Positions 53,607 to 56,600 of a DNA stretch of 64,000 nucleotides are shown in pieces. The position numbers were made by a program, and so were the translations under genes. The notes below the pieces were generated by a model. It was not told the DNA's origin, searched no databases, and worked only from the letters and a program-made list of their open reading frames with translations. Source of the DNA: Guillardia theta CCMP2712 (Eukaryota > Protista > Cryptophyta). The stretch is from contig NW_005434652.1 of NCBI RefSeq assembly GCF_000315625.1, forward strand, positions 364,384 to 428,383, given 5' to 3'. Numbering within the stretch: the first letter of the stretch is position 1; every line of letters starts with the position of its first letter.

Positions 53607-56600
53607 TTAGTTTTCTGCCTCGTTTGCCCACAGTGATGCCTGAGTCTTGGTCAAGCCGAATGATGAAGTGTTGATTGAGACGATGATACCTGTAGGATCT
53701 CATAGGACGAGACAGATGTCCTGCAGACAAACTCAATCTCATCGTCTCATCGTCAAGCTCACAACCCTTCTTGCGATTCGCGGACCCTGTCCATCATGTA
53801 CGAAGCTGCTTCCCTCTCGGTCTTGTTGCACGACGAATCATGTTCCTCCTCCTCCTCCTCCTCCTCCTCCTCCTCCTTGTCGCACAACCACTTCTTCCAA
53901 CCCTGCTCCTCCCCACCTACACTACCACCTCCTCCACCACCCTCCAACCCCTCCCCTAAACCCGCTCCCCCTTTCACCTCCACCCCCCCCCCCCTCGCTC
54001 TTCCTGCCCGCCCCCACCAGCTTCTCCTGCCATACCTTGCCAGGGAGGAATTTGTCTCGGAGCTGATCGAGACAATCTCGCTTGAGGTGTGGGTGCCTGT
54101 GCCTCTCCCATCAAACTCTGACAGCAACCTCAACGCTGCCGCACCTCTGCAAGAAGGTCGAGACCAGGGAAACAAAGAAGTCCTGTTGCTCTCTAACAAC
54201 CAGGAAGCCTTTCACGATCAGACTGAGAGTACCGTCAAGACGGGGAGGTAACAGCAAAAAGCAGCTACTTGCACAAGTACTTGAAGGGCTCTACGTTGCC
54301 CTTGCCATGACCTCCGAGGAAGCTGATGACTTCGCTCGGTAACCTCCGCCCCTGTCAATGCAACTCGCCGCCGTCCCTCGTGTCCTTACCTCAAGGCAGT
54401 TCGGTCGGAAGAGGCTGGTGCGGGGTCGAGGGGGAAGAAGATATCGCGCAGGCAGTGCACCCCTGTAGCAGAAGAAACTCAAAACAGAACCAGTCAAGCA
54501 AGGGAGGGTGACCGTTATCATCGAAGACGAGGCGGTTGGATTGATCTTTGACCTGCTCAGAGTGCTGAGTGTGTGGGGGGCAGCGTCAGGAGTCGCACGT
54601 GCAGGAAGTAGGAGAGAAGGAAGGATCCAGCGTACGATTGGATGAAAGACGCCCTTGCTGCCTGGTAGGTCTGGGGGAGAAAAAGTGAGGCACAAGTGAA
54701 GCGAGCCAGAGGCGCACTGGAGAATGTGAAGGACCAAAGGCGGCTTCGAATCTGTGAGAGATGGCTCCGTCGTGGTTCTTCCATGGCATCAGTCAAGAGC
54801 AGAGTGTGCAGACAGGAAGCGATGAGAACAAACCTTGATGGTACGCTCTGAGAAGTTGAGTTGAAGCTCGATGACAGCCCTAAAGAAAGAGTCAGAGGAA
54901 GGCAAGCACTCGTCATCGACCGGAACACCTGTCTTCAGCGAATGGAAGGCAGTTTCTGGCAGCGAGGATGATCTGTTTGCAGTGAGGGCGAGGAAGAGCC
55001 AAGACGAGGCTGATACCTCCACCTGCCCTCTTGCAAGCAGCAGCTTCATCGCATTGATGAACTGTCAAAAACACGAGAAGATGAGAGGGTGGAGTTGGCG
55101 CAGGTGAGATGATGAGGGATAAGTAGATACCTGAGATGTGAGGATCTGTTGTCTGGTGTTTGTGTTCATCTCTATCAGACACCACCTGAACTGCCTTGTT
55201 AGGACGATATCTAAGTGCCACAACTCTCCACCTTAGCTGCTGCTCGCCGCCTCCTTGGGACGAAGTCGAAGTGAGAAAACCAGCAACGACGGTCGACTGG
55301 TCGACCGCGAGGTCTTCTTGGACATCGCGGATCATGCTGTCTGAGACGATCCCACAGATGGTGACTGACTCGGAACAGGTCGTCATGGTGAAGCTGAAGC
55401 AGGTGTGAGGAGAACCGAAGGTTGACTGACTGACTGACTGCCTGCCTGCCTGCCTGCCTGCCTGCCTGCCTGCTAATGTCACTTACTTGCTTCCTTGATC
55501 AGCGACGATTGCTTGTACTCCGTTTATGAAATACTGAACCGAAAAGTCATCTGTCTGATGAGCAGTCCACCGCACATGTGCATATTCCAACATTTACCAT
55601 CACCATAACCACCATTATATCATCATCAACATCAGCAGCAGCAGCACCACCACCACCACCACCACCACCACCAACAACAACAACAACAACCACAACCACA
55701 ACAACAACAACCACAACCACAACAACAACAACCACAACCACACACACACACACACACACACACACACACACACACACACACACACACACACACACACACA
55801 CACACACACACACACACACACACACACACACACACACACACACACACACACACACACACACACACACACACAACAACAACAACAACAACAACAACAACAA
55901 CAACAACAACAACAACAACAACAACAACAACAACAACAACAACAACAACAACAACAACAACAACAACAACGTTGCAGTTTGCTTTTTGGAATCCAATCTC
56001 TTACCTTGCATCTGCTCGCATGATCAACAACATTGAGGGCATGGCAAGTGCGGAAGATCTCAAACAAACAACTCTCCTCCTCAATGACATCTGAAAAGTC
56101 TGAAGCAAGGGAAAGGATTCAACGACTAGAAACGAGGCAGGTGCTACATGAGTCTGACCGAAGAACTTCTCAATGTGGTTCAAGACGTCACGGCCCAAAG
56201 ACTTGCTCTGAGTGGACTGACGAAAAGCCCGATCGCTGGAATCGTTTCTTCCAACCTTCTTGTAAAGCTCATAGAAGAGTTCGAAGCTGATGCCCATTTC
56301 CAGTCGAAGGAGAGGAGAGATTGCCCTTCTGACTGAACGGTGTTTCCTGAGTACAACCTCCTTTCAGCAAACAGTACCGCGCAGTTGACATCATCTCTAC
56401 ATAAATTCCACAAGAACCACCTCAACACAAGACAAACAACACAGCAACAATCACCTGGCACAGCACTGAAGTGCTAACAAGATGCTGTGAGATTTGTCAT
56501 GGCGGAGCGCAACCTGCATTGCTCCACGTCAGCGAGAATCGTGTGAGGGCGAAGAAACGATCAAGTGTGGCAACAGGAAAGGATGCCAAGGGGAGGAGAG

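Follow-up and report, generated by a model that had tools for sequence, protein, structure and literature searches.

A probable PI4KA-type pseudokinase gene in the cryptophyte Guillardia theta

A stretch of 64,000 nucleotides from the cryptophyte Guillardia theta CCMP2712 (contig NW_005434652.1, positions 364,384 to 428,383; hereafter the window, in whose own coordinates positions are given) carries on its minus strand a gene related to PI4KA/Stt4, the type III alpha phosphatidylinositol 4-kinase (PI4K). We consider it probable that G. theta has no other gene of the PI4KA/Stt4 type, that this one encodes a full-length protein of ~2,100 amino acids in which the kinase fold is kept and phosphotransfer is lost, and that it is maintained as a pseudokinase. 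Yeast, animals and plants all depend on PI4KA/Stt4 for viability, and the enzyme is regarded as a core eukaryotic phosphoinositide kinase. Passages of two sources describe it as the enzyme that makes the plasma-membrane pool of phosphatidylinositol 4-phosphate (PI4P) (PMC3518224, PMC2600738). An earlier reading of the window from its letters alone (the first-pass annotation) had proposed a catalytically dead PI4KA paralogue at this locus. The evidence presented here retains the PI4KA assignment and the loss of the catalytic residues, and does not support the existence of an active sister copy.

Results

Similarity of the kinase-like domain to PI4KA

For the comparisons at the protein level, the spliced product of the window was represented by two database proteins, the orthologue from Hanusia phi and the annotated G. 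theta model GUITHDRAFT_136829, and the exons of the window were used singly. The Hanusia orthologue, compared by phmmer with all sequences in the PDB, matched human PI4KA with an E-value of 1e-24 (89.8 bits), PI4KB with 3.5e-12 (48.3 bits) and the phosphatidylinositol 3-kinase (PI3K) PI3K-gamma with 4.5e-8 (34.7 bits), in agreement with the PI4KA/STT4-type assignment of the first-pass annotation. The alignment pairs residues 716-972 of the orthologue with 1385-1644 of PI4KA chain 6bq1_A, which has 1647 residues, and so reaches the C-terminus of that chain, and a second block (343-419 against PI4KA 1032-1114) is collinear with the first at a weak score of 12.6 bits. PI4KA is also the best PDB match of GUITHDRAFT_136829 (1.6e-5, phmmer). 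By these sequence comparisons, the kinase domain resembles PI4KA more than it does PI4KB or the PI3Ks. The isolated pieces of the locus were uninformative: 20 stop-free pieces gave no relevant Pfam match, because single exons offer too little length and have diverged too far, and one exon piece compared with the PDB by phmmer gave no match.

Two structure predictions were at hand. An ESM Atlas model of residues 640-958 of the Hanusia orthologue superposes on the kinase domains of PI4KB and the PI3Ks with template-modelling (TM) scores of 0.73-0.77. An AlphaFold2 model of residues 690-975, built from a 33-row alignment, reached a mean predicted local distance difference test (pLDDT) of 77.5 and a predicted TM score (pTM) of 0.77. 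In Foldseek the AlphaFold2 model matched PI4KB, PI3K and PI4KA with TM scores of 0.63-0.74 and E-values down to 4e-13; as its alignment consisted mostly of PI4KB, this fold result cannot choose the subfamily, and the model leans toward PI4KB. Among the Foldseek rows the sequence identity is highest to PI4KA, at 24-26% vs 20-23% for the others. The structure prediction that the first-pass annotation had recommended thus came out in its favor, and on these models the locus is predicted to keep the PI3K/PI4K kinase fold.

Loss of the catalytic residues

The ATP-binding strand reads aIFKVGDDCRQD in human PI4KA, cLIEMNTNTRQQ in G. theta and cLIEFNTNTRQQ in Hanusia phi, as aligned by phmmer. The position of the ATP-binding Lys is occupied by Glu in both genera (codon 55170-55172 in the window), and GDDCRQD reads NTNTRQQ in G. 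theta, with GDD replaced by NTN. The first-pass annotation had correctly noted the loss of the Lys and had placed the motif one exon off, on VSDSMIRDVQED (exon 55232-55393); two phmmer alignments to human PI4KA locate the counterpart of FKVGDDCRQD at LIEMNTNTRQQ in exon 55131-55185. In the catalytic loop, KDRHNGNIM of human PI4KA corresponds to KDQSNRLVF in G. theta and to KDHTNMSNRLTF in Hanusia phi (phmmer). The change from DRHNGN to DQSNRL in G. theta converts the Arg to Gln, the His to Ser and the metal-binding Asn to Leu, with the Asp kept, and the loop of the Hanusia orthologue, VKDHTNMSNRL, carries a three-residue insertion relative to that of G. theta. The DFG segment is HIDFGF in human PI4KA, LRDIFF in G. 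theta (VHCLRDIFFPLDP as read exon by exon) and LRDPSF in Hanusia phi. Here too the Asp is kept, the Gly is Phe in G. theta, and the sequence LRDPSFP is present in two independent Hanusia records. The replacement of KDRHNGNI by KDQSNRLV and of HIDFGF by LRDIFF, both reported in the first-pass annotation, was reproduced with the RNA-based exons and with the phmmer alignment of GUITHDRAFT_136829 to human PI4KA.

A comparison with 28 PI4KB sequences gave 72 columns conserved in at least 95% of them. The Hanusia orthologue keeps 30 of the 72 and the G. theta model 25, and among those lost are K724E, D727T, D728N, R830H/Q, H831T/S, N836R and G851S/F. The key residues of human PI4KIIIalpha are K1792, DRH1901-N1904 and HID1917, and a pseudo-PIK has been defined as a PIK without the Lys or without one of the two Asp (PMC3823935). 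By this definition the locus counts as a pseudokinase, its Lys being missing. The full set of catalytic residues (ATP Lys, DRHxxN, DFG) is reduced to two Asp and one Asn, and the traits of a pseudokinase occur together: the fold is kept, the Lys is Glu, the gene is under selection and the orthologue is also dead. Judged from these residues, catalysis by the PI4KA-type protein of G. theta would be very unlikely.

The reading that comes closest to challenging this one is that of an atypical but active kinase, in which the retained Asp residues, together with non-canonical residues, would support phosphorylation of a lipid or a protein, as in some protein kinases that were at first taken for pseudokinases. 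We regard it as unlikely. Both Asp are indeed kept, as is the first of the catalytic-loop Asn residues, and the altered ATP strand shows 89% identity between Guillardia and Hanusia, which argues that the pocket is under constraint. The substitution of Glu for Lys, however, reverses the charge at the site of the ATP phosphates, and the Arg, the His and the metal-binding Asn are all gone. The two orthologues also differ from each other in the loop (DQSNRL vs DHTNMSNRL, a three-residue indel) and in the DFG segment (DIF vs DPS), which is unlike the evolution of a working active site. The identity of the exons to Hanusia is uneven, from 80-90% in several exons of the C-lobe and tail to 69% in the catalytic loop (with the three-residue indel) and 52% in the activation loop. 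A near-identical ATP strand in both genera, next to drifting catalytic and activation loops, suggests that the pocket is kept for structure or for the binding of a ligand, and not for catalysis.

Transcript and extent of the gene

Spliced RNA contigs were recovered from three studies (runs X1, X3 and X4), with lengths of 6,524 and 6,535 bases in X1 and X3 and shorter in X4. Sequencing runs that contain 0.2-0.33 of the words sampled from 53400-59300 have the properties of transcriptomes. The RNA evidence for joints covers 53400-55640, in the 3' third of the gene, plus one loose-end joint to the exon border 56005. The contigs skip 14 introns between 53639 and 55232. After adjustment of the joints all introns are GT..AG, and 16 C-terminal exons are defined on the minus strand; unlike the RNA-joined introns, intron 55394-55486 is placed from the Hanusia orthologue and its GT..AG borders. 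With the phase tracked exon by exon, a single open frame extends from 55535 to 53610 across all 16 exons and ends with ...TSVSSYEILQ ASLWANEAEN, followed by the stop at 53607-53609. The canonical junctions and the continuous frame claimed for the C-lobe by the first-pass annotation are therefore borne out. The two exons that it had singled out for confirmation by RNA are real, with exact borders at 54513-54552 and 54390-54462 in place of 54512-54552 and 54389-54461.

Two concerns raised in the same annotation, that the locus might be untranscribed and that true splicing might restore DRH and DFG, are answered by the spliced contigs of the three studies and by the RNA-fixed splicing, which reads KDQSNRL and LRDIFF. 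Mis-splicing that hides the DRH and DFG motifs is ruled out, as the RNA fixes the joints. Between 53400 and 55640 no base differences or indels were reported between the RNA contigs and the genome, so that no editing restores the catalytic motifs, and RNA editing is ruled out on this ground.

The window has the character of intron-rich eukaryotic DNA, with short introns and numerous microsatellites. The gene extends ~1.07 kb past the window end, and candidate first exons lie ~1 kb beyond that end. An mRNA of ~6.5 kb suggests a protein of roughly 2,100 amino acids. The earlier statement that coding-like exons continue for more than 10 kb is plausible in view of the collinearity of the Hanusia orthologue from 59729 to 53690, the 6.5-kb transcript and the likely first exons past the window end. 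In the public annotation the gene is represented by 'hypothetical protein GUITHDRAFT_136829', a truncated model of 289 amino acids (window 53607-55393). This model starts at an internal Met inside the kinase-like domain, omits exon 54269-54343, runs through the introns after 54036 and then rejoins the true last exon. The present analysis corrects that record, in which the full gene with its 6.5-kb transcript is not annotated as a single unit.

Just past the 3' end of the gene lies a neighboring plus-strand transcript (53400-53549), which ends or begins there and is very abundant in the raw RNA run X15 (about 150-180x, first mates on the plus strand).

Conservation in Hanusia and selection on the gene

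A search with one exon of the helical region against 1.84 billion representatives returned two proteins, a metagenome fragment (1.4-kb contig, 92% identical) and UniRef100_A0A7S0EZI4 of Hanusia phi. The latter is a transcript-derived protein of 975 amino acids, named 'PI3K/PI4K catalytic domain-containing protein', and is the orthologue used above, catalytically dead with other letters. It is collinear with the window from 59729 to 53690 in tblastn and 68% identical to the window exons over 574 amino acids, and all indels over its 975 residues are in frame. Word searches with the Hanusia orthologue found no other cryptophyte orthologue, a further one that started from PI4KB gave metazoan PI4KB sequences only, with no PI4KA among them, and two metagenome scans, one with the protein and one with a degenerate exon pattern, came back empty.

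A metagenome contig, ENA ERZ930064 (1413 nt), aligns to window 57263-55471 with about 90% DNA identity, which is closer than Hanusia phi; its source is probably another Guillardia-like cryptophyte. The exons differ from this contig at 33 of 727 sites (4.5%) and the non-exon sequence at 102 of 789 (12.8%; Fisher p 7e-9), which makes the exons 2.8-fold less diverged. There are no gaps within the exons, compared with six gap positions outside them. The 239 codons compared contain 13 synonymous and 20 non-synonymous differences, from which the Nei-Gojobori method gives a ratio of non-synonymous to synonymous rates (dN/dS) of 0.42 (p 0.018), and dN over intron divergence is 0.26. These figures indicate purifying selection of moderate strength on the helical/linker exons. 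They fit the description of the gene as maintained in the first-pass annotation, which had named dN/dS as a check and neutral evolution as a possible objection.

The same data bear on whether the gene is in decay, that is, still transcribed and spliced yet functionless and on its way to becoming a pseudogene, an explanation that we find quite unlikely. It would account for the degraded catalytic motifs, for a dN/dS that does not amount to strong constraint, for the lack of reads in the ~6% sampled of run X15 and for the lack of any Pfam domain at threshold. Decay is hard to reconcile with a frame that is open through 16 exons and through the 975 amino acids of the Hanusia transcript, with differences between the genera that are all in frame, with exons that are 2.8-fold less diverged than introns and free of indels, or with the 80-90% identity of several C-lobe exons between genera. 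An outright pseudogene is rejected on the open frame and on the contrast between exon and intron divergence.

Other PI3K/PI4K genes and the search for an active PI4KA

The genome searched is a draft assembly of 87.1 Mb in 669 contigs, with the window on contig C22. In a search of the complete assembly, the kinase profile PF00454 matched 30 times, at 17 loci that all lie outside C22, and the catalytic regions of all were read (Table 1). DRH and DFG are intact at five type III loci, all of which carry the PI4KB/Pik1 hallmark IVKSxDDLRQE and match a PI4KB protein strongly, and four of them have the upstream ...RAPY..VE.. segment. The locus on C44 matches PI4KB in the PDB at 5e-34. When the kinase region of the Hanusia orthologue was searched against the G. 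theta genome, it matched the window locus, then the PI4KB-like locus on C44, and nothing else. A search of this genome with the PI4K_N profile PF19274 gave no significant match, which is not evidence of absence. On these sequence searches, the pseudokinase locus looks like the only PI4KA-type gene of G. theta, and the term paralogue in the first-pass annotation is not supported: no second PI4KA-type locus was found, and all other PF00454 loci that were found belong to other classes.

The PI4KA/TTC7/FAM126 complex dimerises through PI4KA. A dead paralogue could, in principle, regulate a co-existing active PI4KA by heterodimerisation, and PI4KA has been described as part of a heterotrimer whose other members are TTC7 and FAM126 (PMC11092606). 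The assembly is a draft from which a gene could be missing. We nevertheless hold a regulatory paralogue to be most unlikely: the kinase region from Hanusia matches only the window locus and PI4KB, PF19274 finds nothing, and the 30 PF00454 matches all fall in other classes. The single-gene pseudokinase is the reading retained below. With regard to the partners of PI4KA, the Hyccin/FAM126 profile PF09790 matches one exon at C45:425112-425300 with 28 bits against a cut-off of 25, and the product of this Hyccin-like exon may be considered a candidate for association with the PI4KA-type protein.

Two further observations concern the other loci. The beta-type PI4Ks are expanded to five separate genes, and the one alpha-type gene identified beside them is dead. 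The four tandem Vps34-like copies (C97:177962-222155; C2-like region, PI3Ka and a kinase with HIDFGYILGRDPKP) are spaced at ~12-15 kb, the intervals containing assembly gaps, and the further Vps34-like gene at C120:6419-8498 reads HIDFEYILG, with DFE in place of DFG.

Table 1. Features of the PI4KA-type gene (window coordinates) and other PI3K/PI4K loci of the assembly (contig, with position where given)
Feature	Position	Strand	Basis
PI4KA-type gene, probable pseudokinase	53607..64000	-	Spliced 6.5-kb contigs; collinear tblastn of the Hanusia phi orthologue
Kinase-like domain, 16 exons	53607..55535	-	RNA contig joints, GT..AG, open frame
Kinase-like domain, first eight exons	55487-55535, 55232-55393, 55131-55185, 55017-55061, 54929-54972, 54834-54879, 54718-54777, 54599-54670	-	
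Kinase-like domain, last eight exons	54513-54552, 54390-54462, 54269-54343, 54145-54222, 54036-54096, 53766-53821, 53690-53720, 53610-53639	-	
ATP-binding strand exon WCLIEMNTNTRQQILTSQ	55131..55185	-	phmmer alignments to human PI4KA; column table vs 28 PI4KB sequences
Catalytic-loop exon VKDQSNRLVFDDN	54513..54552	-	RNA joints, exon reading, phmmer to human PI4KA, PI4KB column table
DFG/activation-loop exon (G)VHCLRDIFFPLDPAPASSDRTAL	54390..54462	-	RNA joints, exon reading, phmmer to human PI4KA
C-lobe and C-terminal tail exons (..GGHGKGNVEPFKY.., LIVKGFLVVRE.., HPHLKRDCLDQLRDKFLPGK, TEREAASYMMDRVRESQE, TSVSSYEILQ)	53607..54343	-	PI4KA-specific similarity up to the C-terminus
469-nt intron with (GTT)n/(GT)n/(GGT)n microsatellite block	55536..56004	-	RNA contigs jump from 55535 to exon border 56005
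Five helical/linker exons	57095-57202, 56603-56830, 56455-56513, 56159-56346, 56005-56099	-	Hanusia orthologue, AG/GT borders
Exon QSWALNVRTAWNFEPELAFDFYQRYRNAEVFDE, weakly matching (collinear block of 12.6 bits) a segment upstream of the PI4KA kinase domain	57499..57598	-	AG/GT borders
PI3K-related kinase (PIKK) loci	C235, C86, C1, C32:237k, C15, C62		
Vps34-like loci	C97 (four tandem copies), C120 (one)		
Type II PI4K-like loci	C64, C18		
Type III PI4K loci, DRH and DFG intact	C44:150295-150705, C52:112503-112880, C32:449151-449648, C144:8938-9617, C159:59865-60789		

The exons of the C-lobe and tail are 68-90% identical to the Hanusia orthologue, with 50% identity in the last ten residues, and the exon at 57499..57598 is 91% identical between Guillardia and Hanusia. 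The donor at 56005 of the helical/linker exons is confirmed by the loose ends of the RNA contigs at 55535. Microsatellites occupy introns of the gene at 55650-55975 ((GTT)n/(GT)n/(GGT)n), 56890-57010 ((GAT)n) and 53840-53880 ((GGA)n), and the related contig ERZ930064 can be aligned to either flank of the first and of the second.

Discussion

A single PI4KA/Stt4-type gene that is maintained as a pseudokinase is our preferred explanation, and a number of results weigh against it. The profile comparison advised by the first-pass annotation was divided: the homology to PI4KA in the PDB is significant, and the PF00454 scores stay under the Pfam gathering threshold of 27.1 bits, at 16.6-19.9 bits for the Hanusia orthologue and 14 bits for GUITHDRAFT_136829. 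The profiles PI4K_N (PF19274) and PI3Ka (PF00613) have no match on any large exon or on residues 1-640 of the Hanusia orthologue, and the N-terminal two thirds of the protein are PI4KA-like by size and collinearity only. The retention of the Asp of DRH, the Asp of DFG and the first catalytic-loop Asn leaves room for atypical activity. The raw RNA run X15, of which ~6% was sampled, yielded no reads from the gene; the expression of the gene in this sample is low. The dN/dS of 0.42 amounts to moderate constraint only, and it comes from 239 helical/linker codons outside the kinase domain and from one metagenome contig. Conservation is supported by two genera only. The claim of an only copy is limited by the searches behind it: no intact PI4KA turned up when profiles were compared with a draft assembly exon by exon, with no canonical PI4KA sequence as the query. 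The EFR3 (PF21072) and TTC7_N (PF19440) profiles gave no match in exon-wise searches of this intron-rich genome, in which the controls matched nowhere either.

In the mechanism that we propose, the protein would act as a non-catalytic scaffold or regulator. The surfaces that join canonical PI4KA to partners of the Hyccin/TTC7/EFR3 type at the plasma membrane would probably be used by the pseudokinase as well, and the synthesis of PI4P would fall to the five PI4KB-like genes and the type II PI4K genes. A wider evolutionary account is possible, and we offer it tentatively. In the lineage of Guillardia and Hanusia the ancestral PI4KA may have lost catalysis, while selection preserved the ~2,100-residue scaffold, the sole protein of the PI4KA type; it would serve a kinase-independent function, with plasma-membrane PI4P supplied by the expanded beta-type PI4Ks.

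A dead PI4KA-type gene, for which the case is built on sequences from two genera, would surprise specialists in phosphoinositides. The literature that we searched reports no naturally dead PI4KA and holds nothing on cryptophyte PI4Ks. If the reading is correct, the survival of the whole PI4KA scaffold in a free-living alga after the loss of its chemistry points to non-catalytic roles of the PI4KA complex. The gene would then be a natural separation-of-function experiment for this complex, with a kinase-independent function strong enough to preserve PI4KA, and it would show which surfaces are still constrained once catalysis is gone. It would also raise the question of which kinase supplies the plasma-membrane PI4P in G. 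theta.

Comparison with known systems

The likeness to PI4KA/Stt4 comprises the best match of the kinase domain, which extends into the C-terminal tail (TEREAA...Y(D/E)(M/I)(I/L)Q), a collinear upstream block (AW..P.LA...F), a fitting size of ~2,100 amino acids and a kinase domain at the extreme C-terminus. The departures from PI4KA/Stt4 are the changes of Lys to Glu, GDD to NTN, DRHNGN to DQSNRL and DFG to DIF, along with the unmatched PI4K_N and PI3Ka profiles. With PI4KIIIbeta (PI4KB/Pik1) the protein shares the kinase fold (Foldseek TM 0.66-0.74); it differs in its lower score (48 vs 90 bits), in the absence of the hallmark upstream segment of PI4KB, in its much greater length and in its dead active site.

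TRRAP works as a scaffold and offers a further parallel, as a very large member of the PI3K superfamily, built of helical repeats, with a kinase fold devoid of catalytic residues. It is named as the pseudokinase of this superfamily (PMC7619004). TRRAP, however, belongs to the PIKKs, has FAT and FATC domains and coexists with active PIKK paralogues, whereas in G. theta it is the PI4KA lineage that is dead, and the searches found no active copy. The type III PI4Ks of ciliates have intact motifs (PMC3823935). A functional likeness is also seen with the pseudo-PIPKs (phosphatidylinositol phosphate kinases) of ciliates and other protists, which are without the catalytic Lys or Asp and have been proposed to regulate rather than to catalyse (PMC3823935). 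These differ from the G. theta protein in that they belong to another fold family, that of the PIPKs, and have active paralogues alongside.

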